A DNA stretch of 64,000 nt from Octopus bimaculoides (Eukaryota). The DNA is taken from the NCBI RefSeq assembly GCF_001194135.2, contig NC_069000.1, forward strand, positions 7,515,061-7,579,060. The letters run 5' to 3'. The translations under genes were made by a program, and so were the position numbers. Shown one piece after another: positions 23,801-51,500 of this stretch (position 1 is its first letter; the number at the start of each line of letters is the position of its first letter). The notes under the pieces were generated by a model. It had not been told where the DNA came from and did no database searches. It was given only the letters and a program-made list of their open reading frames with translations.

Positions 23801-24203
23801 CAGAGACATTCTTAACTTTATTGTGCTGTTGAAAGAAAAGAACAAGAGGTTAAACAATGTCCATTTGTTTGTATATACTCACATCTTCAAAGATCTCTCT
23901 AGAACATTCAGCTGTCTCAATAAATGTTTTGTAATTATGAAATGCTAAATCCTGAGTTTCCTCGAGAATCTGTGCTTTCTCTTCTGCAAGTCTCTCTGGT
24001 TCTCGGCCTGCAATCAGAAAATATGGTGCATTTATAGCAATACTCATAGAATGATAATTGGTGTACATGCTGCATGGAGTGGTAGCATGTCGTGTGTACA
24101 GTGGTGTCTCAGTGCATATAGAATATGGAGTGGTAACATGGTGTATATACAATGATAATATAATTTATATGCAGAGTTCCGTGGTAACAGTGTGTGTGAG
24201 TAC

Positions 24204-24254
<51 letters not shown>

Positions 24255-27200
24255 AGTGGTAACATGGTGTTACAGAAGGAATTTTAGATAGCACTTCACA
24301 TGTAAGGATTTAAATTGGCACACTCATTTCCCCCATGTTTGTATTATAAATACAGTAGGGGAAGACACATGGCCTATGGTTAGAGTGTCAGGCTCACAGC
24401 CATGAGCTAGTGAGTTTGATTCTCAGACTGGGCTGTGTGTTGTGTTCTTGAGCAAGACACTTTATTTCATGTTGCACCAGTTCACTCAGCTGTAGAAATG
24501 AGTTGCGACATCACTGGTGCCAAGCTGTATTGGCCTTTGCCATTCTTTTGGACAACATCGGTGGCATGGAGATGGGAAGCTGGTATGCATGGGCAACTGC
24601 TGGTCTTTCATAAACAACCTTATCCAGACTTGTGCCTTGTGAGTGGGGGGGGGACTTTCTAGGTGCAATCCCACGGTCATTCATGACCGAAGGGGGTCTT
24701 TAGTAAGGATAAAAGTAATTTGTTTGAAGCATTGTATAAATGTATGAATAATATAATAATGATATGTCAGTAATAACATGTTTCTCCAGACTCTTGGATT
24801 ATTATCTTTCTTATATTTGATAAGAGGAATCTTTCCTGAAATGTTACAGAAACATTAAACAACCCATATAAGGCAATACAATATTTTCTCTATATTTTCA
24901 TTTCTTGACATCACTTTACATATTTTGTGTTACTTCTCACCTGCATTGTTTAAATTTTTTTAAAAACATTTATCATATATATATATACAGTGGCAACATG
25001 GTGTATACACACTACAAAATGGTAACAGTGTGTATATAAATAATAAGCAGTAAAAGTAATAATTCAAAGGTAGTCTGTGTACTTACTCAATTTCTCGATA
25101 CCATAAGAACTTAATTCTGCTAGGTATTGGACAAAATCAGGGTTTTCTTTCCAACTTTCTAGAAAAAAAAAAAACCCAAATATTATTATTTAGTTTTTAT
25201 ATTTCTCTTAACAATAACAATTTTAAATGTAGGAAGGTAAAGTAGACCCTGCTGGGGTTTGATCCCAGAACCTAACTGCATGCACATAAATTGGCAGGGA
25301 AGTTTGTGTAGTGCTCAACTAATTCTGTAATTGTGCACAGACAATTATAGAATTGGTAGACTGAATTAATTATAATAATTCACATGGTGACATAGAAATG
25401 GTAAGCAAAGCCGCCTCTTGCAACAGACAGGTCATCCAGGATACACTGGACAATATAGTCCCCAAATACATTGCACATGACAGGATGGTCACAGCTGGAA
25501 TGTTTATGATTATTAATCTTCCCTATCAGGACTGACTTGATGTCTGAACAACAACCAGGGAAGGTGTGCAAACTGCAGGGACATTTTCAACGCTACCATG
25601 TTGAGAGGGTGAAAACAAATGCAAAACAGAAAGATGTTTAGTTACCTCCCTTCGTTTGTATAGCTTTCCAAGAGTGGCCTTAATGTAAAAAGATTGGATG
25701 GTTACGGTTGGAATGTCATTGATCATAGACCGGCTGAATTAGGGTTGAACTACTGTTAAGCAACTTTCCTTTATTCTCACAATAAAGTAAATAATTAAAC
25801 AAATATTTGTACGGTAAGAACAGATATACTAAAAATATTGTTTGAATTTCGGAGAAGTATGATCTTCATTAATATACAAATATATTCAGACTACTGCCTT
25901 CATTTTAGTTGTCATAGTCATATCTCGGTTATTGTACTCTCCAGCTTTCTTCAGGAATTTTCAGTATTATATACTGATATAGTCACACTAGTGTCCTCAT
26001 CTTGGTTGTTATAGTCACAACAGCACAGTCACTGTTCTTTCAGTTTTCTCTATGGATTATTATTATTATTATATCCGCATATAACCAGACCAGTGTCTGA
26101 ATATATCACTAATTAACCTCATATATTCAGCAATGTTCATAGGATTCCAAACCAAACTATTTACTCAATTCATATCATTGTCCATGTCTGAATTATTACA
26201 TGGTTTATACCAGTAAAGTAATTTTGTAAGGAAATGAAGGAGAATTGTCAGACTTTCAGAATAACTATCTCTACCTTACGGGGAAGGGAAAAGGTGTGGA
26301 AATTGGGGAGTAAAACAGTGAAAAATAAAAATTAAAAAAACATTGTTTGGTAAATGAATTCTTCCACAATCGTAATTCCTGTTGCATGAAGCAGGAATAC
26401 TAAAAAAAAGGAAGTGAACAACAACTACACGATTATTTTGCCCCTTTCCATCTCCGTAAAATAGTGATAGCTATTCCCAAAAGTCCGTCGTAGGATTAAT
26501 CTAAGTACAGAACTGAAAGGTAATCTTCCAGTTTCGAGAGGTTAAAAAAGTAAATAAAATACAAGGGAAATAACTGAACGTCATCCGTACTACTTTGTTT
26601 ATAAATAAATCACGTGATTTGATTGACGTTAACTGTTTATATATAAATCACATACGTGATTGAACATCATAGTTTCTTATGAGAAATCTGCACAACATCT
26701 AACCCTAAACTTTTATAAAAAAAAAAATTCCGTCGCATGCTGTTTGTAAAAAGAAAAAAAACATTCTAAACTTTTATAAAAAAAAATTCCGTCGCATGCT
26801 GTTTTAGAGAAAAATTAGTACGGATAATACTGGTAATTCGTTCAGTTATTTCCCTTGAATATTTTTATTTATTTCTTTTACCACGAAACTGGAAGATTAC
26901 CGAACTGATATTTACTTTTTATGAACTCAGGAAGGATGAGAGACATGTTAAAACATTGTAGGATTTGAACTCATTAGAGTAGAACGACTGTCCTAATAAT
27001 TATTAATACTAAAAAGGTTAGAAATCTAAAGCTTTGTTAGAAGCGAACTTATGACCTGATTTGTCACAGGTTCACTTTAACTACATAGCTATTAACAGGG
27101 AGAAAGATATGAACATTAAACATTCCTGTAAGCCCTTTATATTAAATCTCAACGAGGTAGCATTTATGCAGTCGTTCGATCTGCTAGAAAATAGCACAGC

Positions 27201-27583
27201 AGCCAAACTGCCCTAAAACTACGCCCTGTTGCATTAAATATGGAAAGACATAGTAAATAATATGGCTTTAGAGGTGCTATATTTGTTAAAAAAAAGAAAA
27301 TGATAAAAATAGAGGATGACCATCGCTGCAATGTCTTTGAACATCGATGTGTTCGGTCAGGTGTAACCTGGTGTTAACGACAAAACAATCTCTTGTCTCA
27401 ACAAACCAAATAAATCAATAAGAGAGTTATACGGCGGAGATATTAATGTTAGGAGTATAACTGTCACCAGGTAGTGGATTGTTGTTGCAATTACCACAAA
27501 GAAAAACAGTAAAAATTACCGGGGAAAGAATCTTTAAATATCGCCGTCAGAATTGTTTCATCTTCCACGTCAACGGTAGACAT
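14872..27583 (-). CDS. COG8: Conserved oligomeric Golgi complex subunit 8, 801 aa
   Basis: Exons in transcription order: 27520-27583, 25087-25158, 23883-24007, 23287-23390, 22297-22468, 21100-21261, 20596-20647, 19887-20065, 19198-19397, 17979-18057, 17304-17488, 16300-16468, 14872-15714 (2406 nt, in phase). Starts [22 protein letters not shown]; contains [66 protein letters not shown] and [40 protein letters not shown]. Confidence 0.96.
15131..15229 (-). repeat. Three perfect 33-bp coding repeats in the COG8 last exon ([11 protein letters not shown]), flanked by degenerate copies over about 15070-15450
   Basis: GGGACATCAGGGGTGGCCTCAGGAACAAAGGCT x3 on the plus strand. Confidence 0.95.
16900..17100 (-). 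mobile_element. 3' fragment of a CR1/L2-type LINE
   Basis: Minus-strand [20 protein letters not shown] matches the conserved C-terminal motif of CR1/L2 ORF2. Confidence 0.65.
17130..17283 (-). mobile_element. Partial mariner-type MITE, same family as 53478-53700
   Basis: TIR CCAGGAACTTTTCAGCACCCCCTTGTA plus shared internal sequence. Confidence 0.75.
18440..18610 (+). mobile_element. SINE family C (CATGCTGGCATGGG...GGCTGGATGCCCTTCC...GCCAACC)
   Basis: Recurs at about 36890-37070, 39945-40095, 40130-40270 (-), 43290-43480, 48975-49155 and 58200-58290. Confidence 0.7.
21690..22264 (-). mobile_element. Head-to-tail array of three family B SINE copies separated by (AAT)n
   Basis: Copies at about 21690-21795, 21812-22025 and 22046-22264. 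Confidence 0.8.
22580..22750 (+). mobile_element. SINE family D (TTCAGTCATTTGACTGC.GCCATGCTGG), probably reverse orientation
   Basis: Recurs at about 43830-43900 and 58310-58460. Confidence 0.6.
24360..24705 (+). mobile_element. tRNA-headed SINE family E
   Basis: A-box-like TGGCCTATGGTTAG and B-box-like GAGTTTGATTC; related copies at 44700-44830 and 44950-45260. Confidence 0.65.
26520..26900. repeat. Foldback / MITE-like element in COG8 intron 1
   Basis: Imperfect inverted arms 26520-26592 and 26817-26900 (GTAATCTTCCAGTTTCG...CAAGGGAAATAACTGAACG) around an internal 60-bp-period duplication. Confidence 0.7.
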
Positions 27584-28041
27584 GTTGGTGACACTAGAGA
27601 GTTCCACTCTGTGCCGTAATGTGGCAGACGATAATGTTTAGCTGTATATAATTGTGTAATGTTTACACTGTAATGTGTAAGATGCGTGCATACTATGTAT
27701 ATAGCTGTGTATTATTTACATAGTACTGTGTAGTTTAGTACAGCAGTTGTCAGTGGTGGCCACATTAGCTAGTGATACTAGAGAGTTCCACTTAATAGTA
27801 ACCGGGGCAGACGATACAGTTGTTGATTTGAATTTTGGAGTTGTCTCCCTTAAAAAAATTAGTACACTTAAAAGTATTTTCTTTTCAATAGGGACAAAAT
27901 TTCGATGAATCAATAATAAACGTTCACCAGTTTTTCCTTACTTGGGAAAACAGGTGAAGGTTAGTGACAGTAAGAGTATTTGGCTGAAGAAAATCTGCTT
28001 CACTCAATTCCATGTGAACCACATAAGCATGGAAAAGTAGA

Positions 28042-28906
28042 TGTTAAAACAATCTGAGGAATTTCAACCATGTTTCGTGGTCTGCTACCACAACAGCTCC
28101 TTTATAGGATCCAGTTAGCTGAAGATATCATCAGGAGGAACCACGTCCTGTTTCGGCCCCTACTCCTCTACCGTTTTGACGTGGGGGGCCCACCCCCTTT
28201 CGGAGGTGTCTTCAGCTCTGGTGTTGGGTGCATGTCTTTTTTCACTGTTTGTGACTGTTCTGATTCAACTGTGGAATGTCCCTCGCTATGGTTATTTTCC
28301 AGGAGGTTCTGGCCACACGTCTTACGGTTCATCAACCCGAGTTGTTGAATTACTTTCTTCTGACATACCTTCCCTTGGTGGATTAGGATCCAGTTAGCTC
28401 AAGACATCATCAGGAGGAACCACGTCCGGTTTCGGCCCCTACTCCTCTACCGTTTTGACGTGGNNNNNNNNNNNNNNNNNNNNNNNNNNNNNNNNNNNNN
28501 NNNNNNNNNNNNNNNNNNNNNNNNNNNNNNNNNNNNNNNNNNNNNNNNNNNNNNNNNNNNNNNNNNNNNNNNNNNNNNNNNNNNNNNNNNNNNNNNNNNN
28601 NNNNNNNNNNNNNNNNNNNNNNNNNNNNNNNNNNNNNNNNNNNNNNNNNNNNNNNNNNNNNNNNNNNNNNNNNNNNNCAACTCTGGTGTTGGCTGCATGT
28701 CTTCTTTCTTCTATTCCCTGGCGTCTTCGATGCAGCATCAACGAGTGTCAGCGTCCGACTGATCGTCCTGTCAAGTTCCCCTTTTTATATCTGCTGCTAG
28801 GCTCCAGCAGGCAGCCCCAGCTAGTTGTCACGTGACACTGTCTAAATTTCCCGCTGCTAGGGTCCAGTAGGCAGCACCAGCAAGTTGTCACATGACACTG
28901 TCTACA
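28042..28906 (-). mobile_element. Possible solo LTR or other unclassified repeat, interrupted by a gap
   Basis: TG...CA termini, minus-strand ATATAAAAA at 28782-28790, a 279-bp internal duplication and a 60-bp duplication. No clean TSD. Confidence 0.35.
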
Positions 28907-31896: not shown

Positions 31897-32066
31897 TTAA
31901 AACCCTGCTGGAACAGCTCCACTTCTATAATCAATGTTGACAGAAAAGGTGCCATTTTTCTGGTATATTCCATGAACAAATGAAGGAGGTCCATAACTAG
32001 TGATATCATGACCAATTTTCCTCAGTTTCTCAATCACTTTCTGAAATAAATGAAAATACACAGAAT

Positions 32067-32108
<42 letters not shown>

Positions 32109-33602
32109 GTGATGATGATGATGATGATAGTAATAAATGCCCTGATGCAGTACCAGGCAGTGGCTCTCATGGCTTCTGATCTTAATTGATTGGAAGTGTT
32201 ATCATGTACATTGTTTTGTCTTGGTATAAAAGATGGGCTGCAGCAAATATTCTGCTTAATACCACAGATTTGCTAGTCAGTTGTTTGACCGTAACCAGTT
32301 GAGCATGTCCCTTGGTGGCTGACAATATGTGCATCTCTAACCATGAGCAGAAGTAGTTGGGGAGCATCATAGCCATGTGTTGAGAGGAATTCTTTGAGGT
32401 TTGGATAATTCACTTCTGGAAACATGGGTGTTTTGTTCAACATCTTTAAACAACTCTTATTCAGGGACCTTTTGAACTGGGCCACACCAGTGAGGTCATG
32501 CACTGTTTATCTTGATATGAAATCACCATGCTGTGCACATATGGTTGTGATGCTTCACATATTTGCTCCCCGGTGTCACTTTGATGGTATTCACTGCTCT
32601 CTCACTCCATAATAATCACAATGGTTTCACTGCTTTTCTGTATTTAAATAATGAGAAGTAATAAAACATTGTTGTTTCCTCACCTTTGGTAAGTAGTCTT
32701 CAGTTTTAGTCTGTGTTGGAAGAATCTGGTTGTGAACTCTGAGGGCATCAATGGCTTCTTTGATAGTGTCATTGAACCACACTAGATTGTTCATCACCTG
32801 TGTATATATGCTACATTATATTATGTTTTATATATATACACACACGCACACACAAGGGTTGGACAAAATAATGGAAACACCTAGCATCATAATTTTGAAA
32901 TATCTGTAAAACAGTCAAAAGCTTGTTATTTTTTTCATGTTTTTGATTTATTATTAGTGTTGCTTAATATGCTTTGCTAAAATTGCTGTTTTTTTTGGAT
33001 ACCATCAGAAAAAGGTAATTAAAATTCATTAAAATGACAGATCTATCGAACTTTCAAAGCAGTCAGATTGCTGGCGCTTGTATGGCAGGCACTAGCATAA
33101 CAAAAACAGCCAAAATGTTTGGTGTATCAAGAAGTACTGTCTCAAAAGTAACGACAGCCTTTGAGAAAGAGGGAAAAACCTCCTCATCAAAACAAAACAC
33201 TGGAAGAAAACCAAAATTTTCAGATAGGGATCATCGGACAAACCAACTTACATAGGAGAGAGAAGAAATAATTTTAGTTCCTCCAGAGGCTCCAATAACC
33301 AGTTTGGTGCTGCCTGCTCTGTCTGTCATAATAATTGGTGACACATAGGACATAGGAGACTTGTTGGCCCCAATCAAATTAGGGAGACGTTGGTTTATTG
33401 AGGCACTGCGATTGTGTCTGCTTGGTGTCGAGAATGCTGCCATTCCATTGTTAAACAAAATTCCAGTCCTTCGTCCCAAAATCTGGGCACCAAACCTAAA
33501 AGACAAGACAGTTTGCATGTGATACTGTAAACCCTGTAGTTGGTATTGCTGGTGATGCTGCAGTGAATACATTTGTTACCTGTAGTGTATTTCTGATTGT
33601 GT

Positions 33603-33641
<39 letters not shown>

Positions 33642-34957
33642 TTGGTCTTTATATGATGCGTATGTGTGTGTATACACACACATACACGTACACACACACA
33701 CACACACAAATATGTATATATACATATACACACATACATATGTATATATATATTATATATCCAACAATGCTGATTGGATTCATCACGATCAAGGTATTGT
33801 CTCACCTGTTTGATACCTGTTTAGAATTTTACTTGAAGATGGTGGATTGTATGTCATGGCGTAATCTAAGAATACATCAATAAAATTCTACTGCAACAGC
33901 TGTTGTAAATTTTAAACCTCATTTGTGTTCTTTTATTTATATGTGTGTGTGTGTGTGTGCATGTGGGTGCATGCATGTATGTGTCTGTGTGTCTGTCAAA
34001 TAAAACTGTATACCACATACCTATGATTGAGTGAGCTGGTCACTGCTACAGCAATACCATCCGAGCCGATGCAATTCAGATGAGTGGTCCCTAAACCTTC
34101 CTCATTGAGGGTACCAGGGTTATAATATCCACTGTCATAGGTGCTATGGTCATTAATCCGTGATTTAATCCCTGTGGCCCACTCTGTTGATGTTAAATTG
34201 ACAAGGAACTTTAAAATAAGAACGAAAAATAAACTAACATCAGATTATACCAGAGTTTGCTGTGGATGACAGAATTCATGTGTTAAGGCAACGGTGCTGT
34301 CATTACCATCACCATCATCATCATCATCATGATCACCATCATCATCATCGCAACCACCACCACCACCACCACCCTCTTCATCATCATCATAACTATCATC
34401 ATCACAACCACTACCATCATCATTACCACCACCTTCATCATCCTCATCCTCACCACCACTGCCACTACCACCATTACCACCATCAACATCATACCACCAC
34501 CACCACCACCACCACCACCACCACCACCACCACCACCACCACCACCATTACTACCACCGCCACCACCATTATCAACAGTCACTCATCTGTGTTACACTAT
34601 CGCCAACCACTCACTTCTGTTACACCATCAACAATACCTCGCACCTGTTACTCACCTGTGAGACATTTTCATCAAAGCTGGGGTCCTCTAGTCGGGATCG
34701 GATGCCATACGCAAACTTGAATGTTTCGATGATTCTGTGTAGTGTTGTGGCGAACATGTTGAGGTTGGTGCGGTGGTTGGGCTTGAACTCATACACTGAA
34801 GCATCAGAGATAGAGTAGTATAAGATATTACAGGTACTCAGTGGGTAATGTGGGATGTGGTGGGTGTATGTTGAAGTAGAAGGGGAAGTGGTGTTAACGG
34901 AGATGTAGAATGTTGTGACATAGCAGCATACTTTCTTTGTGTTAGAGAGAGAGAGAA

Positions 34958-35001
<44 letters not shown>

Positions 35002-38000
35002 AGATAGAGAGGGAGAGAGAGAGATAGGAAGAGAGATAGATAGACGGATATGGCTAAATGGTAGGTGAGAGATGACAAGGTGACAGGTGGTAAATGGCAG
35101 GTGATATATGATTAGATGATAGGTGACAAATGACAGGGATTGATGACAAATGACTAATGAAAAGATAACAAATGACTGATGACAAGATGACAAATGACAC
35201 AGGCAAGGTGACTATGACCAGATGACAGGTGACAAGTGACAAGTTAAAGATCTTACGGTCAAGAACATTGAGTATCAGTTGCACTATTGGGCCACTCGAT
35301 GGAGGTGGTGTTGCCATTACTTGGTCACCGTTGGACAATCTCGTCCTTAATGAGGCTGGAAACTTTACATTATAAGAGGTGAGGTCACTCAAGGACATAA
35401 GAGATCCTGAAAAATAAGGGCAACAAGAATAACAGCATCAATGGTTTCTTTATGAAACATAAATCGATTTTGTTTGTCAACTGGGGCCTTGAGTAAGTGC
35501 CTTCTACTATAGCCCTGGGCTGACCGAATTGTCATGAGGGGATTTGGTAGAGAGAAAATGAAAGAAGTCCTCTGTGTGTGTGTGTGTGTATGTATGCATG
35601 AGCACATACACACACACATACATATATATATGTGTGTGTGTCTATGTATAGACACACATATGTGTGTGTGTGTATTTGTTAACATTTGTGCTTCAATGAA
35701 CTGCATGAGCTACAAGAAGGGATGAAGATGATGATGATAATAATTATATATATATAACTTGGAAATAACTTGGAAATAAGGAAAAAACAAAACACAAAAG
35801 AAAACATTTGAGGAGTGTGCATAGTGATTCATACTTCCCTCACAGATCAAGTTTCATAAAAGAGTGACAAAAGTCTGGTCCATGTGAATATTTTGTCACA
35901 GATCTTGTTAATATGATATTGTAATATAAAGGTGCAGCTAGCTGGCAGAACTGTTAGCATGCCAGGCAAAATGCTCAGTAACATTTTGTCCATCTTTATG
36001 TTCTGAGTTCAAATTCTGCTATGGTTAACTTTACATTTGACGGATATTTGTCCTCATCTTGTTTGTTGTTAACACAACGTTTCGGCTGATATACCCTCCA
36101 ACCTTCGTCAGGTGTCTTGGGGAAATTTCAAACCCGGGTTCTCATTCCTAACGATGTTACTATTATTATTGTATTATTATTATTATTATTATTACTATTA
36201 TTAATCAGGTCGCTGCCGTGAATCGAACTCGGAATCTTGGGGTTAGTAGCCCGCGCTCTTAACCACTACACCATATGCCCTGACGAAGGCTGGAGGGTAT
36301 ATCAGCCGAAACGTTGTGTTAACAACAAACAAGATGAGGACAAATATCCGTCAAATGTAAATAATGTAAATAATTCCTCATCTCTTAAATATAGAACTGT
36401 GAGGTTAACTTTGCTTTCATCCTTTTGTTATTTTAACCCTTTAACATTCAGATTATTCTGCCAAATGTAATGCTTATTTATTCACATTGTTTTGAATTAA
36501 TCATGTATTGTCTCATAGCTTTGAGATATCGATGAAGTGATTGTATATTTCTAGAATAACACTGTTGGGTAGATGTGAGTGGTTGGATCTGGCCAGTTTG
36601 AACCTAAAATAGGTAGAATATTTGGGTCTGATATAGCCAGTTTAAATGCTAAAGGGTTAAGGGTCCATGAAAAGCTTTGGTTTATATGTATAGCAAGAAA
36701 CAATTATGTTTCTTTCTCTAACATTTTACATAGTTCAGCCTATACAAGTGAATGAGCGAATAACGAAATAGGAATTTTGAAAGAAGTATCTACAAAATTA
36801 GTTTTTAAATATCGAATGGCTATGGGGGTCCACCAGAATAAAATGGTAATCAAAGGGGTCTAAAGGTAAAAAATGGTTGAGAATTACCATCATCACCATT
36901 TAATGTCTGTTGTCCATGCTGGCATGGCTTGGATGGTTTGACCAGAGCTGGAAAGTTAGGGAGCTGCACCTGCCTCCAGTCTGGTTTGACATGGGTTTTA
37001 CAGCTTGATGCCCTTCCTAACGCCAACCAATTTACAGAGTGTGCTGGGTGATTTTATGTGGCACCGCTTACTCTAAAAAATAAAAGTGATGTAAATAAAC
37101 CAGAACTTGAACTCACCTTCACCAGCTTCTCTCAGATCTTCAACAATGGCATTAGACAAGGAGCCATTATACACAGCAAGAAATCCTTCATCAGAGATTA
37201 TCCTCAATGTTTTTGCTAGTTTTGGGTGTTTCATGAGATCTCCTTCTTGATAAACACGTCTTGTTGCCTCATTGACATACAGCTCTCTGATTGGACAAAA
37301 TCAATGCAACATATTGATATTACTTATATCTTCAACACTACTATCAATAATATCAAATATCAGGTGATATTATGAATGCATATAAGCTAAGAAGATGAAA
37401 ATATATTTAATATTAGCTAATATAAGTAGGGTATTATTGTTTACAGGTTATATAGGGCTTATATAATGAGAAAAGCTGCATGTATAATGAGAAAAGCTGT
37501 ATATAAAACGATAAAACCCTTGAAACAAAAAGATCCCATAAACAATAATACCAGATCTCTATTTCACTTACCTGAGTAGGGGCTGATCCTTAATTTCAGA
37601 CTCCATTTCTTTGAGGGTATTAGCCAATGAATGCGACACATTAAAACCTTGTGTTGCAAGTTGTATCACAGGAACAAACAAGTGTTTCCATGGTAATGAG
37701 CCATACATCTGATGTGCCTGCCATAAACCGTACAGTTGCCCAGGAACAGTCACTGATGAAGGACCTACATCGATTGGAAAGGTCATAGGAGTAAGAGGTG
37801 TACTGAGAGGGGGAGATTCTGGCTGAGATGGTCATGTGACTGTGTATAATTCAGAAAGTATTGTTGTGGTTGCTAAGGGAACACTCTAGTCAGTTGGTAT
37901 TATTAAGGGGAATAGAGTTGGAAAATCAAATATGTGGCATCATTTCACAGATCCATTGCATTGACATATATATGACATAGTTTGGTCTCTATATTGACCA

Positions 38001-40649
38001 TCAGGTTGTGTTTAGGCTGTTGGGTGGTTGTAAAGGCATGCTGTGTGGTAGTGAGAGCATGATGGTGTGTGTTAGTGAAGGAAAGTTGTGCTGTGTGTGA
38101 GGGCATGTTGTGTGATACCGAGGGTATGTTGTACTGCAGTGGAGGGTAGCTTGCATGTTAGTGAGAGCATGTTGTGCATAGAGAGGGCATGCTATGTGAT
38201 ATCGAGGGCATGTTGTACTGGAGTGAGGATATCTTGTATGGTAGTGAGATCATGTTGTGTGGTTGTGAGGACATGGTGCTTTGTGGTGAGGGCACAGTGC
38301 TTTGTGATGAGGGCACGGTGCTTTGTGGTGAGGGCACGGTGCTTTGTGGTGAGGGCACGGTGCTTTGTGGTGAGGGCACAGTGCTTTGTGGTGAGGGCAC
38401 GGTGCTTTGTGGTGAGGGCATGTTGTGCGATTGTAAGATCATGTTGTGTGGTAGTACAGTATAGTGTATGGCAGTAGTGTTACAGAATAGTGTCTAGGGA
38501 CGTTAGCATTAGTGTTTAATCACATGTCTGATCTATGATGAAAGGTGTCCCAGTCATGGCCATCCCATTTTTGTTTAAAACATTACATTATTCTAGATGC
38601 ACATGACACTTTGAGAGGGGTAAATAGATTGCTGGATACAGAGAGAGAGGGGGAGGTGGAGAGAGAGAGGCAGACACACAGATAGGTAGAGGGGTAGAAG
38701 TAGTGTAGTTACCTGTCGGACGAGACATATTCTTCAGGCTAGTCACATGATACGGTGATTTACCAGAGGCATCTATGATGACATTCTTCTGAGATTTACT
38801 GCAACAACGACAACATCATGATCAGAACAATGCCTTTTGAGGAAATTTGGCTGATGGAAGCACACACACACACACACACTTATATACACAAATAATGGGC
38901 GTCTTTCATTTTCTGTCTACCAAACCACAAAATTTTGGTTGACTTGGGGGTCATAGTAGAAGACATTTCTCAAAGTCCTTTTTTTAGTGATGATGATGAT
39001 GATGATGATGATGACAGTATCGATTGTGATGCTGCAGCAGATGATAGTAGTTGTGATGATGATGATGATAATGATTGTGATGATGATGTTGATGATGGTT
39101 GTGATTATGGTGATAGTGATGGCAGCAAGGACAATGATAGCAATAGCGATGAGATCACAGAAACAATAACCATAGCAACAACAAAACTGAAAATGAAAAA
39201 GAAAAAAAAAGTATATTTTAAGACTAACCTCTCCCTCCCCCATCACCTCAGGTCCAAGGGAAGGACACAGTACACTTGATAGGTGTTGTGTTAGTAGTTA
39301 TCGGTTCAAGATTCTGACAGTGATCTTCGAACAGAACCAGAAGAAGAAAAGAAGATGAAATGAGAGAATATTCTTGGACAGAGCAAGAATGGTTTGGAGT
39401 TAGTTTGTGGTAAAAGTAAGGGAAATGTTGAACTGACCTGTCATAGATATTCATAATCAAACTGCCTCCGATTCCAGTGGACATTGGTTGGTCGAGTGCC
39501 ATACAGACCAAAGTGACAATCACAGAATCAATTGTGCTTCCGTTCTTCTCTCTCAGAATTGACCTGTTAAAACACATGTAGAATTGGAGATATTTTAAGG
39601 ATGTTGATACTGTAGATATATATCAATATTTAAATATATACTGGTGGTGCCCCAGCATGGCCGCAGCCTCAAAGCTGAAACATAGAAAAGAATAAAAGAA
39701 TAGTACATATACAAATATTGTCGGTCTGTTAGATAGTATGTAAAACAAATGATAGAGATGGAAAACACAGGAAACTGTCATTTGTTTTATACTCAATGTA
39801 TACAGAGGAATTCCTGAGGTAGATCCAACAACAGTTGTGTAATTACCGTGGGTGACGTCAGGTAACCATAAGCAGTGAATGTGCTTCATTAGTGTACTAC
39901 AAGGAACATAGCCAACACTCAAATATTAACTTATATTCATCATCATCACCACGATCATTTAATATACATTTTCCATGCTGGCATGGGTTGGATGGTTTGA
40001 CAGGAGCTGGTAAGGCCAGGAACTGCACCAGGCTCCATTATCTGTTTTGACATGGCTTCTATGGCTGGATGCCCTTCTTATTGCCAATATTGTAAATATG
40101 TAATATTTTATGCATACTAAAAGCACTCTGTACATTCTGTAAAGTGGTTGGTGTTGGGAAGGACATCCAGCCATAGAAACCATGTCAAAACAGACTGCGG
40201 AGCTTGGAGCAGTCCTCTGGCTCAGCAGCTTCTGTCAAACCCATGACACTATGGAAAACAAATGATAAATGGTGATGATCATCATCATTGTCATTGATAT
40301 TGCACATATTCCAACAATGTAGATACATAAATATTGCAAGTATATGAATATTATAAACACATAATTATTGTAAAGATGTAAACATTGTAAATGTCAATAT
40401 TATAAAGATATGTTTGGAAGATGAAATTACTAGTGTAGGGAGGCAAAAAGATAATCTTAACAAGAGAGAATTACTTACATGCCAAGTTGGGAACACATAG
40501 ATGAATCACTTGTGATTACTGCCTGGTTGTATTCCAACAATTTGGAACTAGATATGGCAAAGTGGAATCTGCTCTTTTGGATCAAGTAGAAGTAACAGAC
40601 GAGGATCATAGCAACCAACACTCCAATGGAGAGGACAGCCAACTTTCCT
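31897..40649 (-). CDS. GGT1-like: Gamma-glutamyltranspeptidase / glutathione hydrolase family protein with type II membrane anchor and atypical substrate pocket
   Basis: Exons: 40479-40649, 39438-39563, 38713-38798, 37572-37764, 37117-37286, 35257-35406, 34656-34795, 34021-34208, 33252-33495, 32684-32797, 31897-32040 (1726 nt, in phase). Signal anchor KLAVLSIGVLVAMILVCYFYLI, STGIGGS, VTVPGQLYGLWQAHQMYGSLPW, cleavage motif G|TTH, GASGGT, and C-terminal DYRSGAVPAGF*. The start-codon exon is uncertain. Confidence 0.93.
32853..33240 (+). mobile_element. Tc1-like transposon 5' fragment (TIR plus HTH-coding region)
   Basis: TIR CAAGGGTTGGACAAAATAATGGAAACACC; ORF 33034 MTDLSNFQSSQIAGACMAGTSITKTAKMFGVSRSTVSKV. 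Confidence 0.9.
34290..34570 (+). repeat. (CAT)n/(CAC)n low-complexity tract
   Basis: Seen directly; intronic in the GGT-like gene. Confidence 0.9.
36033..36402 (-). mobile_element. Non-autonomous retroelement with a tRNA-like head, (AAT)n, hammerhead-bearing tail and 82-bp inverted arms
   Basis: Arms 36031-36112 and 36279-36360 (one mismatch); 10-bp TSD GGTTAACTTT at 36023-36032 and 36403-36412, inside a family B SINE. Confidence 0.8.
36068..36116 (-). ncRNA. Type I hammerhead ribozyme motif, minimal Penelope-like form
   Basis: GACAC CUGACGA A GGUUG-loop-CAGCC GAAAC GUU GUGUU: stem I 5 bp, stem II 5 bp, conserved core. A second core without stem I lies on the plus strand at 36280-36320. 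Confidence 0.6.
36437..36656. mobile_element. piggyBac-type MITE
   Basis: TTAA|CCCTTTA...TAAAGGG|TTAA. Further copies at 45854-46062 (also TTAA-flanked) and about 47958-48147. Confidence 0.8.
38085..38460 (+). repeat. 21-bp minisatellite (GTGAGGGCACGGTGCTTTGTG)
   Basis: About six near-perfect units at 38280-38420 with degenerate flanks. Confidence 0.9.
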
Positions 40650-41036: not shown

Positions 41037-41730
41037 GTGGTAGGCTCATCCGGAACCCTTGACAGGAAGAGATCCAGTTTGGTGCATGTGTGTGCATGCA
41101 TGTGTGTGTCCGTGTCCGCACTTAACAATATAATAATCCTATTTAGAGACAGTAGAGCTAAAACATAAAACTTACCTTTTAGTACAATGCATGCTGATAG
41201 GAACAATATGCCTCCAGTGTTGTAGGGGTTATTTGGAGTTCTTAAAGACACTTGCTGTTGTTGTTGTTGTTGTTGTTGTTGCTGTTGTTAAAGTGCTAAT
41301 TCTTCAGTTGTCTTTGGAGGTCATAAAACAACTAGAATGCAATGCAAGTCTAATGATCTCTCCCACCAACCACCACCACCACCACCACCACTTTCATTCA
41401 TCATCATCTCTGACACAACTATCACCATCAGCGAGATTCCTTCATCATCAGTGCCACCATTATCGACTACCCCCTGGCGCTGCCAATACCATCACCCCCA
41501 TCTCCAAACTTCTTCATTGCTACCACCACCAATTGCTACCCCCACTCGACACTACCACCATCTGAAACATCACTGCCATCATCATCAACAGCAGCAACAC
41601 TGCAGTCTCTTGATTTTTCCTCATTACCACCACTAATGCAGCTGATATTCTATATCTTATATTTGTACAGATTTATATATATATATATATATATACATAC
41701 ACACACATATATGTATACACACACACACAC

Positions 41731-41847: not shown

Positions 41848-42042
41848 CAGAGTCTACCAAAAAAATGTATACACACTTCAGGAAATGAAAACTCTGTATA
41901 AACATTTTAATTCAGTGTTATTGCAATTTATTCAGATTTATTGCAATTTGATAAAACATCAAAAGAGGTCTTTATATTTATAGGGGTACTTATACAAGTT
42001 AAATATTTAAGCAGATTTTTCCTCTCCTGGAGTGTGTATACA
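41848..42042. mobile_element. Tc1/mariner-type MITE, right end in a gap
   Basis: Left TGTATACACACT and right AGTGTGTATACA inverted termini. Confidence 0.55.
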
Positions 42043-42068
42043 NNNNNNNNNNNNNNNNNNNNNNNNNN

Positions 42069-42116
<48 letters not shown>

Positions 42117-45566: not shown

Positions 45567-48500
45567 TTAGGGTAGCATCTGGGTGTCTTGCTGTACAGGT
45601 TCTGGTTGGCTTTTCTCTGCTTCTATCTTTTTCCGTACATTTGGGTAAGTACACCAGTTCTGAAAATGAATAGGAAAATAATCTCATTAAATATTTTGTT
45701 ACCATATTTTTGTTGAGATACTCTGCGTTTACTTCGAGTGATTGACATTAAATGTAATGAAGAATTTAGTAAAATAACTTAGTTATTTCGTATGTAGGAG
45801 TGTTTGTGATACATAAATCAATACAGTAGTCATCTAAACTTAGTTATTATTAACCCTTTAGCATTTAAACTGGCCTTATCCGGTCCAAATATTCTTGTTT
45901 AATGCTTAAGCAGCCAGATCTGGATTCTCACACCTACCCTACTATGTTATTCTAAAAATAAACAATCCCATCATCAAAATCTCAAGATAATGCATGATTA
46001 ATTTAAAACAATGTGAATTGATAAGCATTACATTTGAGAGAAAAATCTGAACACTAAAAGGGTTAAGCTGGTATTAGGAACAAATTAACACTAAGTTTTG
46101 GTGGGAGATTTGAGGTCAAGTTACAAGATAATAAGTAAGGGTTACATTACAGAACAATCATTTGCTTGTTTGATGGCTCCAGTTAAGAAGTATTTAGGGA
46201 CTCTATCTTGTGAAAATTAGGAACCATGTGATAATTAGGGATCATAAGAAGATAGCATTAATAATTCTGTATTTATTCATGCATAGCAAAAAACCCTTTT
46301 CAGAGTAGACCCCTTATAACCAGGAGTGTATTATACTGGTTTTGTGTATTTTGTGATGGTCAAATATCTATCTATCTATCTATTTACACACACACATCCA
46401 TAGTGTGTTTGTGTTTATATATAAAACAATCTGCAATTACTTTAGGACCAACCAGCTGGACACATTACATACAAATAATATTTTTTTCTGTGATCTATTT
46501 ACTAAAAGCTAGGAGTGTTTGTGATACATAAATCAATACAGTAGTCATCTAATACAGCTGTGGCTGAAGTAAAGACTGTCCTACACTAACAGCCAATGTT
46601 ACAGTGAGCTGACAGTGAACTTACCAGTTTCTGGGACTGTTTCTCCAATAAATTGTATGTCCATTGGTGGAGCTGGCAATGAAACAGAAAGACAGAGGAA
46701 TTCAGATGGATATTGTTGTTTTTCTCAAATGCAACTGACCAACGCTACAGACTCGCTTGTACATTACTGACTAACACTACAGTCTCTTTCAAACACAACT
46801 GACAAACATCAGTCTCTCTTACACAATTGGCCAATGTTAGCCTCATTATGAAACTACAGACCAATCATTCATTTCATCCACATATATTGTCAGTTACTCC
46901 TGCCTGTGTGAAATCTTCCTCTACTCATGTAAGTCAACAATAATTATGTTTCTTTAAGGATGATGATGATAGAGATGATGATGATGGTGATGTCAATGAG
47001 GACAGCTACAATGAAACAAGAAGCAAGGGCATGTTACCTACCCAGAACTGGTTTGGTATCGCTACTCCTTGTACTCTTTGTAACTTTCCATAGTCAGGAC
47101 ATTCAATATTATGTATCTGAAAATATTTAAGAGTAGTAGTAATCAGTGTATTCTACTAGGGTGACAAAAGATCAATATAACAGAGATTGAACAGTAGGGT
47201 CCCCCAGCATGAGAGGGACTAAACAGTAGGGTCTTGCAATATATATGTATAAAACAGGGGCTGAATTTTAGGTTATCTTGACATGACAGTGGCTGTTATA
47301 TGGTTTCAAAATGAGAGGCTGGCAGCAACTGTGAAGTACCTCAAAATGACAAGGGGCTGAAATGTTGGTCTCTGAAGATGATAGGAGTTGAACTCTATGG
47401 TCTGTTAATCATGATAGCAAGGCTGAAGTGTAGGGTCTTTTAACATGATAGAAGCTGTTATAGGGGGTTTTCAACATGAGAGATGCTAAACTAATGAATC
47501 CTTCAGTGTGTCAGGGGGCTAACTTATAGGATTTTGACATGACAGGAAATTTACAGTGAGGTTCGCTCCAGAAGACAGGGACTGAACTGCAGGGTCTCTC
47601 AACATAATATAGACCTTTGGACTGTAGGGTTCTCTCAATAAGAGAAAGTTTGATAAAAATGATAAGAAAGTGAAACATACTGCTGTAAGTGAAAATCTAC
47701 ACAGATGGGCTGTGGAGGATATCATGGGTCCCTGGCTGATATCAATATGATCACCAACACGATACAGGTTTATACTATCTCCGGTACTGGATTGAGATGC
47801 AATGCTGGGAATCTGCTGCAATTTGAATCTGAAAATAAAGTTGTCATTTCTCATATATATTTTACATCAAGGTTTCAATTTCAGCTTTGGCTTTGTTTTC
47901 ATAAATATATATACGGTTGTCATAATTATATTTATAACTCAACACACAAAATACTCAACCCATTAGCATTTAAACTGGCCATATCCGGCCAAAATATTCT
48001 CCTAATTTTATGTTCAAACTGGCCAGATCTGGTCTAAGCAATCATGTCATTGACATCTCAAAGCTACAAGATCATGCATAACTAATTCAAATGGATGTGA
48101 ATAAATAGGCATTACATTTAACAGAATAACCTGAATACTAAATGGTTAATTGTGGTCGTCTTTTTGTTAGCCAGACAGACTGTGAGGCAAGCAAAGTAAG
48201 CTGCCTTGCTCTAAAACACTCCATACACTGAATTCACCACTATGAGACCAATGACACCATTCAACCTCATATTACAAATGTGTATGTGTGTATCTACACG
48301 TACGCATTTGTACACACAAGAGGTTAAGAAATTTACTTCACAACCACATGGTTTTTGGGTTCAGTCTCAATGTGTGACACCTTGAACAAGTGACTTCTAC
48401 TATAGCACCAGGGTGACTAGTGCGTTGGTAGATAAAAACCAACAGAATAACTCCCATCCAGACACAACACAACTTCTGGACAACACAGATGTTATCCATA

Positions 48501-51500
48501 CATCATACAACAGCCACACACACAAGGTATAGATAGACAAGTATGTACTACTAAATAGAAGTAAATAAAGCTATGAACCTGTTGTGTTGGAACATTTCTC
48601 TTGCTGTCTGTTCGTTGACTGTTAGAGGTTCAAACCTGTAATCCTGGTACTGGAGCTTAGAACCAATAGAGCTGAGGGCGTATAATTCTCTCTGCAGATA
48701 AATAAAAGATCTGTACTGTAGTGGTGGTGGTGTTAATGGTGTTAGTGGTGAGGGTGTCAGTGGTGTAGTATGGTTGGTAGTGTACATCAAGTTATCACAA
48801 CATAAGATTTTACATTAATATTTATGCAAATCAGTTTACCAAATCCCTTGTCAACATCGACAACAGTAAGAACAAGATCTTACTTACCCACAACATATTT
48901 AAGACTTTATAATATCATGGCTATGACATATGTAGACATCCTAGACTGTACCTTAGCTTACCCATGATGATGATCATCATCGTCATCATTTAGCATCAGC
49001 TTTTTATGCTGGCATGGGTTAGACTGAAACTGGTAAGCTGGAGAGCTGTACCAGGTTCCAACCTGATTTGGCAGGGTTTCTATGGCTGGACACCCTTCTT
49101 AATGCCAACCATTCCAAGAGTGTAATGGGTGCGATTCACATGACACCGGCATTGGCCCTGACTATGATTTCACTTACATACTTAAGACAACAGAGCTATA
49201 ACATACATAGACGTCTTAGATTATGACCCTGCTATGGGTGCTTTCATGTGCCACCAGCACCTATTACTTGATATTAATTTCTTTTACAGTTCTGTACACT
49301 GCACCATGCCACAGCTACCCCCTGTTTCTGTGAGCTACTCCTTACCACAGGTACTCACTAAATCTTCGATGTAGACACCTAATCTGTTAGAAATAGCAAC
49401 TAAATTCTGTTGGCTCAAATGCTAACATTTCAAATAAACAGGGATACACTGGTTAATGTAGTTCTACATTGAAATCCTTAGAGAAAAAAAGACGTGATGG
49501 TCATGACTGGGTTGTCATTGATTATAAATCAGCTGATTGAGTTGATCTATACACAATACCTATTTCTTTAAACAAATATATGCCTATGTATGTATGTATG
49601 TATATATAAATGTATGCCAGTAAAAATACACATATACACACACACAAAGCATATACAGATGCATGTGAATATATTTGTGTGTGTGTGTGTAAAAGACAGA
49701 GATGATGTAGGAGACATACCAAAGTTGGCTTCCAGTTCGGTAAATTCAGGTCAGCATCATATACAAAACTGCCACTTTTTACTGCAGACAAAGAACAATG
49801 TTGTTAATTACAGCAACGAGGTGGAAGATGTTGGAAGTGGGAGAAGAAGAAGAGCAAATATGAAGTATTGATTAAAATATATACACATATAATGTGTTTG
49901 TGTGAGTGCATGTATACATATATATAAAATTATATTTGGAGAGACAGACAGTCGCATATATTTATGTACACACACATCGAGAGAGAGAGATATGCGTGTA
50001 TGTGTTTATGCATGTACATGCATGTATATAAACATGCATACATACAAATATGCATATGCATATATTATATGTATGACATGCATTGTTGAGAATAATGTAT
50101 GACCACTCAGTCAAAATGTAAAACAAATATGTTGTTAGTCAATAACCAGCACACAAAGAATTTGTTTGAAATGTAAAAAGTCTATGCAGAGTCTACCCCA
50201 CTTTCTCTCGTTAATTGTGTAACCTGAACTGGTACACCATGTACCACATGCCAGACACATAAAAGAGACACATGGCAAGAAAGGTAGGGGACGTAAAACC
50301 CAAATAAGTCATTGCTGATTCCACCTATTGTTGCACTCCGCACTTATGAGGGGGTGCTGAAAAGTTCCTGGCTTTAAAGAGGCCCACATACCTACACACA
50401 CACATGCATACATATTTACAGACAACCATATATCCATACACACACATGCATATATACATACAGAGACATATTCATAACACATTCAGTGTTGATGTAAATA
50501 AATATTTGACTTCGGGTATGAAGGAAGAACAAAAGGTTAACAACTCGAATTGCGTAAAAAGCCCCATGATGGGGTTATTCAATCTACAAAGGATTTAGGG
50601 CCAGAGTAAAATTGACAACTATGGTAATAACTTGCCTTTTGAAGGCTTTACTGACCACAGGCAGGTTAAAAGTGAAGGTTGGTATTTAAAGTTGACACTC
50701 ACCATTAGGGGATGGGAAGCGACACAGCTCCACATGGTAGTCATCTTTAAATGCTGACATTAAAACGTAACCCAGTATAAAAGAGCAGGACCTCCAAAAT
50801 GCCTGAAAATATATAAATTACATTTGATAACTGTGGCTGATATCAGGAACACACACATATTATATAAACACACAAACACACTGTATAAACACATGCATAC
50901 AGATGAAAAAACATGAACACATGCACAACCCTGGAATCAAGGAGGGAGCCATTATATAGCCATTTGACCTGCTAGAAATTTCAACCAAATCTACCTCAAT
51001 TCCACTGAACCTTATTAAAAACAAAGGAAGGAAATATTAGATAATGTAATCCTAGATACAGTTTTTCTGAATAATAGATGGGATGGACACATCTGGAATG
51101 TCTTTGATCATAGAAATGGTGGACCAAAGCTGAGTTGAAGTGTAGAACAACAACAACAACAATATATTGAAGTACTTACTCTGTTGACTTCTTGACAGTC
51201 ATCCTCTTTGAAATGAAGGAAGCTGAGTTGACAGTCTTCAACAAGAGGTCGATGCATGTCCCATATCTGACCATTAACACATGCCACTACTGACCGCTTC
51301 ATTAACAACTCTGCTATGTCTGTAGGCAGAACATAAAACAAATTTAGAAGAAAAGCTTAATATATGTATACATATGTATGTAAATATATATATATATATA
51401 TATATGGAAAAAAAGTCAAGGTAAAAAATGCTAAAATAATTTTATCAAAAACATTTCAGTTTCGGTTTCAGTCATTGAGACATTTTCAACCTTAAGAATG

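Follow-up and report, generated by a model that had tools for sequence, protein, structure and literature searches.

Retained catalytic core and replaced gamma-glutamyl donor pocket in a GGT-fold protein of Octopus bimaculoides

A gene located on the minus strand of a 64,000-nucleotide stretch of Octopus bimaculoides DNA (NCBI RefSeq assembly GCF_001194135.2, contig NC_069000.1, positions 7,515,061 to 7,579,060; hereafter the window) encodes a protein of the gamma-glutamyltransferase (GGT) family, which retains the catalytic apparatus of the family and has lost the pocket that binds the gamma-glutamyl donor. The pair formed by R107 and D423 in human GGT1, as well as E108, E420, D422, and S452, are replaced by small or aromatic uncharged residues, so the protein should not be able to hold the alpha-amino-acid end of a gamma-glutamyl donor. 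As judged from these residues, the annotated glutathione hydrolase function is very unlikely, and the protein is almost certainly neither a glutathione hydrolase nor a gamma-glutamyltransferase. We put the chances at about even that Octopus produces instead a self-processing ecto-Ntn (N-terminal nucleophile) hydrolase whose donor pocket was re-specified and whose Argonauta counterpart turned into a dead enzyme.

With regard to the active site, positions are given in human GGT1 (hGGT1) numbering. The heavy chain was mapped by a HMMER alignment to PDB 4GDX, which places INAREVAP over IDASGKSP, and the light chain by a MAFFT alignment with 120 database homologs, including the rodent GGT1 ortholog P0012, plus the human GGT1 sequence. 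The latter (569 aa) carries the published residue at the 15 of 15 landmark positions that were checked. These alignments uphold the residue correspondences to human GGT1 that had been proposed in an initial annotation of the window.

The Octopus protein retains T381, H383, N401, S451, G473, G474, and H505. The nucleophile threonine is T392 in all three Octopus species (O. bimaculoides, O. vulgaris, and O. sinensis), and the oxyanion-hole glycines are G485 and G486. T399 is replaced by a serine, which is a conservative change, serine being natural at this position in 44 of 137 relatives. Replacements are found at the Arg107-Asp423 pair expected of a glutathione hydrolase (R107S and D423A), at Glu420 together with Asp422 and Glu108, expected at the site of the donor alpha-amino group (E420G, D422A, and E108G), and at Lys562 and Tyr403 of the acceptor site (K562S and Y403R). 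G88S, R448S, and G564A are also observed. Among the residues forming hydrogen bonds with the donor, S451 and N401 are retained and S452 is a tyrosine in all four octopod sequences. R107, S451, S452, and N401 hydrogen-bond the alpha groups of the donor glutamate, E420 forms a salt bridge with the donor alpha-amino group, D423 pairs with R107, and G473/G474 form the oxyanion hole (PMC6949936), while K562 and Y403 sit in the acceptor site (PMC12663528). Mutation of R107 or D423 strongly lowers the activity of human GGT1, according to a passage of PMC4035087 citing Ikeda et al. The loss of nucleophile or oxyanion hole that would mark a pseudoenzyme is absent from Octopus and present in Argonauta (T381A and G473A).

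To assess the conservation of these positions, 1.84 billion representatives of 50%-identity clusters were searched exhaustively with HMMER, using the O. vulgaris ortholog P0001 as query, which gave a reference set of 137 single-domain eukaryotic cluster representatives. R107 is retained in 129 of these, D423 in 127, S451 in 130, S452 in 120, and T381 in 131. Other positions are less constrained, as E420 is E in 67, D422 is D in 88, and Y403 is Y in 60. R107 and D423 are both lost in only 2 of the 137 representatives, so the Octopus pattern exceeds chance. Conservation reaches 90% or more in fifty alignment columns of the set; the Octopus protein retains 47 of these columns (median relative, 48), in agreement with the claim of the initial annotation that the catalytic apparatus is kept and the donor pocket gone. 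The three lost columns are G88, R107, and D423, which suggests that the loss is aimed at the donor salt-bridge pair, on a normally conserved background. The octopod signature is absent from the best 150 representatives.

The gene comprises 12 exons (41192-31897, minus strand), as obtained by reading the minus strand of the window and splicing, and encodes 580 aa. Its product has exactly the sequence of XP_014771229.1 ('glutathione hydrolase 1 proenzyme isoform X1', Octopus bimaculoides), which independently confirms the gene model. An intact, in-phase open reading frame (ORF) of 11 exons had been described within 31897-40649. These 11 exons do exhibit AG/GT boundaries throughout and consistent phases, but the first of them starts in phase 2, so the ORF is incomplete within these limits: the start codon lies in a 17-nt exon 1 that had been missed (ATGCATTGTACTAAAAG followed by a gt donor, 41192-41176). 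This exon was searched for with a back-translated pattern derived from the N-terminus of the orthologs, MHCTKR, which has a unique match at 41192-41174, with 0 expected by chance. The codon coordinates given previously for the nucleophile, S-G, G-M-A-A, and Y are all correct on the minus strand. The exons are as follows.

41176..41192, minus strand: exon 1, 17 nt; start codon, MHCTK and two bases of R6.
40479..40649, minus strand: exon 2, 171 nt; transmembrane signal-anchor at about aa 8-30 (about 40645-40577), start of the ectodomain, C58 (hGGT1 C50).
39438..39563, minus strand: exon 3, 126 nt; STGIGGS motif (G88S), C83 (hGGT1 C74).
38713..38798, minus strand: exon 4, 86 nt; IDASGKSP, with the R107S/E108G codons at 38767-38762 (S116 and G117 of the 580-aa protein).
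37572..37764, minus strand: exon 5, 193 nt; of equal length in O. vulgaris and Argonauta.
37117..37286, minus strand: exon 6, 170 nt.
35257..35406, minus strand: exon 7, 150 nt.
34656..34795, minus strand: exon 8, 140 nt.
34021..34208, minus strand: exon 9, 188 nt; predicted autocleavage at G391/T392, nucleophile codon 34088-34086, H383 equivalent, T399S at 34034-34032, N401 equivalent at 34028-34026.
33252..33495, minus strand: exon 10, 244 nt; LFNNGMAAF (E420G, D422A, D423A; 33446-33435), degenerate lid-loop segment, PMSYV (S451 kept, S452Y; 33350-33345, with the Tyr codon at 33347-33345), GASGGT at 33293-33276 (G473/G474 equivalents at 33284-33279).
32684..32797, minus strand: exon 11, 114 nt; H505 equivalent (RVHNQ).
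31897..32040, minus strand: exon 12, 144 nt including the TAA stop (31899-31897); K562S codon at 31923-31921 in YRSGAVPAGF.

No alternative exon with the canonical residues was found in the introns or in the rest of the window, and the ORFs on both strands between 28 and 46 kb amount to nothing more than exon fragments and low-complexity repeats. Assembly gaps (runs of N) are located at about 28460-28740 and 42040-42070, both outside the GGT gene. Isoforms lacking internal segments are annotated in O. sinensis (X2, P0002, 525 aa) and O. bimaculoides (X2, P0277, 561 aa); about aa 306-360, a segment preceding the cleavage site, are missing from the former.

The octopus protein matches the PF01019 profile (G_glu_transpept) with E=1.5e-134 and 450 bits, for a cut-off of 27, over profile positions 2-510 of 512. 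Its PDB matches are human, E. coli, and Bacillus GGTs, human GGT1 chains being the best solved relatives. The score with NCBIfam TIGR00066 is 299 bits, under the cut-off of 358; this model is centred on bacteria and was not used as evidence. An AlphaFold model was built for the 94%-identical O. vulgaris ortholog from a 62-sequence alignment. This model, which is a prediction and not an experimental structure, shows a predicted local distance difference test (pLDDT) score of 92.9 and a predicted template modelling score of 0.91. The sole internal stretch with a pLDDT below 50 is aa 441-446, in the lid-loop region. Foldseek superposes the model on the human GGT1 heavy chain with a template modelling (TM) score of 0.94 and a root-mean-square deviation of 1.3 Å, and on full-length single-chain bacterial precursors with TM scores of 0.86-0.90. 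Based on this structural model, the octopus protein has the alpha-beta-beta-alpha Ntn-hydrolase fold of GGT (MEROPS T03, PF01019).

The most hydrophobic stretch of the protein is aa 11-29, with a Kyte-Doolittle 19-residue maximum of 2.67, preceded by K5 and R6, and the structural model exhibits a helix at aa 5-32. This N-terminal segment fits a type II signal anchor, like that of GGT1. The initial description of a membrane-anchored GGT-fold protein is thus borne out by the profile match, the hydrophobic anchor, the AlphaFold model, and its superposition. The octopus protein carries 10 N-glycosylation sequons, seven of which are common to Argonauta, and both cysteines of the C50-C74 disulfide are present (C58 and C83).

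The three Octopus species exhibit identical residues at the replaced positions, and the O. vulgaris gene comprises 12 exons with all lengths equal to those of O. bimaculoides. Between these two species, we counted 38 nonsynonymous differences for 1343 sites and 55 synonymous differences for 397 sites. The ratio of nonsynonymous to synonymous substitution rates (dN/dS) is 0.19-0.29, depending on the method (p=6e-14 against neutrality), i.e. below 1, the condition that the initial annotation had proposed to test. Between Octopus and Argonauta, dN is 0.25 and dS is above 1.4 (saturated), which indicates a deep split; the corresponding dN/dS is 0.11-0.18, a pairwise value that does not tell whether the Argonauta copy is still constrained. 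The pocket changes of the octopus protein are neither decay nor sequencing error, as had been argued from the window, because they are common to three Octopus species and affect the same positions in Argonauta, with intact ORFs and dN/dS values of 0.11-0.29.

The deposited model of the Argonauta hians ortholog (P0003, locus L002) skips exon 3, but an intact 126-nt exon 3 with AG/GT boundaries is present at L002:13006-13131, and its addition gives 12 exons and 580 codons without stops. The intron that follows exon 3 contains, at L002:13209-14419, about 10 tandem copies of the 3' half of this exon; the units of the array encode ...ALDQPMSTGVGASLIMNIYD and carry the donor site of exon 3 and the start of the intron. 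This tandem array is probably the cause of exon 3 skipping in the deposited model.

Argonauta shares NNGMAAF, S452Y, Y403R, and G88S with Octopus, the replacements being identical from position 420 to 452. This suggests that the pocket was rebuilt before the two lineages split. Argonauta differs from Octopus in the pocket by T-A at 107/108 and by A at 562. The S/G/A/Y signature recognized in the window is therefore conserved in the three Octopus species and, for positions 420 to 452, in Argonauta, but does not extend to 107/108, where Argonauta has T/A. In none of the O. vulgaris, O. sinensis, and Argonauta orthologs are the canonical R, E, and D retained.

In Argonauta, the nucleophile is lost, the codons GGG GCA ACC CAC specifying G-A-T-H (T381A), and the oxyanion hole reads GATAGT (G473A). 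The near-invariant G87, G283, T397, N441, K447, and I477 are also changed, so that 39 of the 50 near-invariant columns are kept. Lineage-specific losses at these columns number 0 in Octopus and 8 in Argonauta (p=0.008). When weighed against the overall rate ratio of 29:51, this asymmetry has a p value of 0.027, and it vanishes at less conserved columns. The 0-versus-8 difference suggests that selection for the catalytic core went on in Octopus after the pocket had changed. As Argonauta lacks the nucleophile and an oxyanion-hole glycine in an intact ORF, catalysis is not conserved across the clade, and it looks dispensable in Argonauta.

The gene order is conserved as TGS-domain gene, GGT, and COG8/Dor1 in the window, in O. 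vulgaris (L001), and in Argonauta (L002). The two neighbours in the window are the following.

46595-48706, minus strand: last exons of the TGS-domain (DRG-like) gene, upstream of the GGT gene, on the same strand.
20010-27613, minus strand: COG8/Dor1 exons, downstream of the GGT gene, on the same strand.

The best single-domain match of the octopus protein is a canonical GGT of Mytilus californianus (XP_052060351.1, P0124, locus L003), with 40% identity, whose gene also adjoins a COG8/Dor1 gene, head to head. This COG8 neighbour suggests that the octopod gene arose from an ordinary molluscan GGT at the same genomic position, and not as a novel insertion. Pecten, Patella, Lottia, and Ostrea offered no informative neighbour in the 10-kb flanks, or their protein was not on record. 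In a neighbour-joining tree (100 bootstraps), the octopod clade is 100% supported on a long stem of 0.51 substitutions per site and groups with the animal GGTs. Tajima tests assign to the octopod lineage 2.4-3.5 times as many lineage-specific changes as to canonical mollusc GGTs (p 1e-7 to 1e-14). With regard to squid, cuttlefish, and nautilus orthologs, word-indexed and exhaustive searches gave no match between 56% and 40% identity, although these taxa may be missing from the database. Similarly, no cephalopod is present among the best 120 matches to Mytilus P0124, used as a query for a canonical cephalopod GGT, which may reflect database coverage.

Compared with human GGT1 (PDB 4GDX/4GG2) and canonical animal GGT1-like proteins such as that of Mytilus, to which it is 35-40% identical, the octopus protein exhibits the same fold, type II anchor, 12 coding exons, and C50-C74 disulfide, as well as the nucleophile Thr, N401, S451, G473/G474, H383, and H505. 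In contrast, it differs from them by R107S, E108G, E420G, D422A, D423A, S452Y, Y403R, K562S, and G88S, and by a degenerate lid-loop.

Multiple active-site replacements are found in 9-10 of the 137 clusters (about 7%) and mostly include the nucleophile. The genera concerned are Saccoglossus, Ptychodera, Tubulanus, Diaphorina, Ixodes, Uranotaenia, Diploptera, and Aphidius. The degenerate proteins P0184, P0185, P0206, P0213, P0223, P0258, P0159, and P0257 come from hemichordates, a nemertean, a psyllid, a tick, a mosquito, a cockroach, and a parasitoid wasp. Degenerate GGT paralogs appear to arise repeatedly in animals and to be uniformly annotated as active enzymes. Most of them, annotated 'glutathione hydrolase 1-like', are also without nucleophile (T381G/S/Y), like Argonauta. 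Among the degenerate animal GGTs surveyed, Octopus shares the configuration of an intact core without the R107-D423 pair only with the Aphidius protein. The venom gamma-GT3 of Aphidius ervi is described in Colinet et al. 2014 (PMC4035087) as a divergent GGT paralog that is expressed, keeps the nucleophile, and carries mutations at donor-site residues known to cripple human GGT1; it provides a published precedent for a degenerate animal GGT. The relative from A. gifuensis (XP_044014151.1, P0257) has the configuration closest to Octopus, with the nucleophile kept, R107K, and D423A. However, the Aphidius proteins belong to an independent lineage (Hymenoptera), are secreted in venom, and exhibit far fewer replacements, retaining S451/S452, E108, and D422 and showing only a conservative change of R107 to K. 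Beyond one wasp venom protein, degenerate animal GGT sites are not documented in the literature that we searched, which also contained no paper on this octopus gene and nothing on GGT pseudoenzymes as such or on the donor-site residues of GGT6/GGT7.

The analogy with bacterial GGT-fold enzymes drawn in the initial annotation is a fair one, HpxW (PDB 5HFT) being a relative in both sequence and fold. In HpxW and in the Bacillus halodurans 'cephalosporin acylase' 2NLZ, the T03 fold, the Thr nucleophile, and the Gly-Gly are kept and the Arg/Asp pair is absent. The 2NLZ-like subfamily exhibits Ser-Gly at 107/108 and Ala and Ala/Gly at 422/423, which match the residues of Octopus, but the two differ at 420 (R in the subfamily, G in Octopus) and at 451/452 (H-T in the subfamily, S-Y in Octopus). 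The bacterial and archaeal GGT-fold enzymes that use other donors are 22-27% identical to the octopus protein, are not phylogenetically related to it, and are soluble or periplasmic. Membership of the octopus protein in the 2NLZ-like/HpxW group was considered and rejected, based on G at 420, S-Y at 451/452, the low identity, and the grouping of the clade with animal GGTs. The Ser-Gly match is probably coincidental or convergent; as a mechanistic clue, convergence was given less weight because Argonauta has T-A at 107/108 and because the bacterial matches were enriched by the word index.

Based on these observations, a sequence of events can be proposed. The gene probably descends from a canonical molluscan GGT gene located next to COG8. 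Before the Octopus/Argonauta split, the donor pocket would have been rebuilt by replacement of R107-D423, E108, E420, D422, and S452, together with Y403 and K562 in the acceptor site. The product would be an ectoprotein with the GGT Ntn-hydrolase fold, N-glycosylated and tethered by a type II membrane anchor, at a cellular location that we infer. Octopus has kept T381 (the nucleophile), N401, S451, G473, G474, and almost every other family-invariant residue under purifying selection. Its precursor would still self-cleave at G391/T392, as predicted from the sequence, and the mature heterodimer would hydrolyse or transfer the amide or acyl group of a non-gamma-glutamyl substrate at the cell surface. 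The uncharged nature of this putative substrate is suggested by the lost charges only. In Argonauta, later loss of the nucleophile and of other invariant residues would have produced a catalytically dead or dying homolog.

A more far-reaching version of this proposal, to which we give somewhat less than even odds, is a working cell-surface Ntn-hydrolase with the GGT fold that was re-specified before the split and inactivated secondarily in Argonauta; it would be an animal counterpart of the HpxW/cephalosporin-acylase-type enzymes and a new metazoan T03 activity. A working hydrolase is favoured because the Octopus core has been kept, since the pocket change, as faithfully as in working GGTs, and Argonauta shows the fate of core positions once the constraint is lifted. 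Several points weigh against this view. Argonauta retains an intact 580-codon ORF without its nucleophile, so the protein can persist without catalysis, and the conserved 'catalytic' residues of Octopus may be kept only for folding or maturation. Both acceptor-site residues are lost, and the lid-loop ('PSPANFIxPGKRP' segment), which shapes the substrate channel, departs from the canonical sequence and differs between Octopus and Argonauta. The genomic context points to no candidate substrate. With regard to the origin of the gene, orthology with Mytilus rests on a best match and on a single conserved neighbour, whose orientation differs; the placement of the octopod clade among animal GGTs has a bootstrap below 40, probably due to long-branch attraction to fish GGT5a.

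The protein could otherwise be a non-catalytic GGT-fold surface glycoprotein throughout the clade, processed or not, which acts by binding (e.g. as a receptor, chaperone, or adhesion partner) and, in Octopus, keeps its catalytic-looking residues only for folding or maturation. We consider this main rival less likely, though far from negligible: T381A (GCA), G473A, and six further near-invariant losses coexist in Argonauta with an intact 12-exon ORF and seven conserved sequons, all four species carry replacements at both the donor and the acceptor site, the lid-loop region varies within the clade, and degenerate GGT paralogs, some of them without nucleophile, have been found repeatedly in other animals (hemichordates, a nemertean, a psyllid, a tick, a mosquito, and a cockroach). 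Nevertheless, Octopus keeps 47 of the 50 near-invariant columns, as working GGTs do, and a purely structural role would not predict the asymmetry of 0 versus 8 lineage-specific losses. An improbable alternative is that of an enzyme still acting on gamma-glutamyl compounds, with a different binding mode, in which R414 (Y403R) or other residues substitute for R107, or with a narrow substrate, as exemplified by GGT5, which prefers leukotriene C4. The retention of T381, N401, S451, and G473/G474, the fact that otherwise canonical animal GGTs vary at E420 (E in 67 of 137) and D422 (D in 88 of 137), and the new Arg at position 403 are compatible with such an enzyme. However, R107 and D423 are each kept in 93-94% of the representatives, human GGT1 loses much of its activity when they are mutated (Ikeda et al., as cited in PMC4035087), and in Octopus both are small uncharged residues, alongside the replacements of E108, E420, D422, and S452. 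As R403 also occurs in GGTs that keep R107, Y403R is not a compensating change. It is highly improbable that these features stem from a mistaken gene model, an error in the assembly, or a pseudogene of recent origin. All the protein records are computational predictions, exon-skipping isoforms are annotated for O. sinensis and O. bimaculoides (X2 in both), and the published Argonauta model skips exon 3. Yet four independent assemblies agree on the residues and the exon structure, no stops or frameshifts are present, AG/GT is found at all 22 internal splice sites, dN/dS lies far under 1, the window offers no alternative canonical exons, and the N runs lie outside the gene.

The introns of the gene contain several repeats. 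In intron 6 (window 36060-36390), a tRNA-like stretch (ggtgtagtggttaagagcgcgggctactaaccccaagattccgagttcgattc) and an (ATA)n run are enclosed by a pair of perfect inverted repeats of about 75 nt (tttgacggatatttgtcctcatcttgtttgttgttaacacaacgtttcggctgatataccctcc...). The arrangement resembles a tRNA-derived short interspersed nuclear element (SINE) or a foldback element; ARAGORN (tRNA) and Rfam scans of the window found nothing. A SINE-like element ending ...ggtcaaaccatccaa(g/c)ccatgccagcatgga... is present in three copies in the introns, at about 36905-37050, about 39975-40100, and, inverted, about 40150-40270, two of which form an inverted pair in intron 2. Intron 4 contains a 21/42-nt minisatellite, GTGAGGGCACGGTGCTTTGTG, in about 20 copies (38018-38455), and intron 8 a long (CAC/CAT)n tract (34301-34568). 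Further microsatellites are located at 32068-32108 and 34943-35044.

The gene is annotated as 'glutathione hydrolase 1 proenzyme' in four genomes, a function that is very probably wrong, and its inclusion among the GGTs would mislead studies of cephalopod glutathione and redox metabolism. The octopus gene is more extreme than the known GGT paralogs that have abandoned the donor site, a phenomenon which is not unique in animals. Octopus and Argonauta constitute a natural experiment, as Octopus held its catalytic core for a very long time after the pocket was rebuilt, whereas the sister lineage let it erode. They offer a tractable system in which to ask whether animal GGT paralogs can gain new amide substrates, as their bacterial homologs did, or become binding proteins, and the octopus gene is a testable candidate for a new specificity among animal Ntn-hydrolases.

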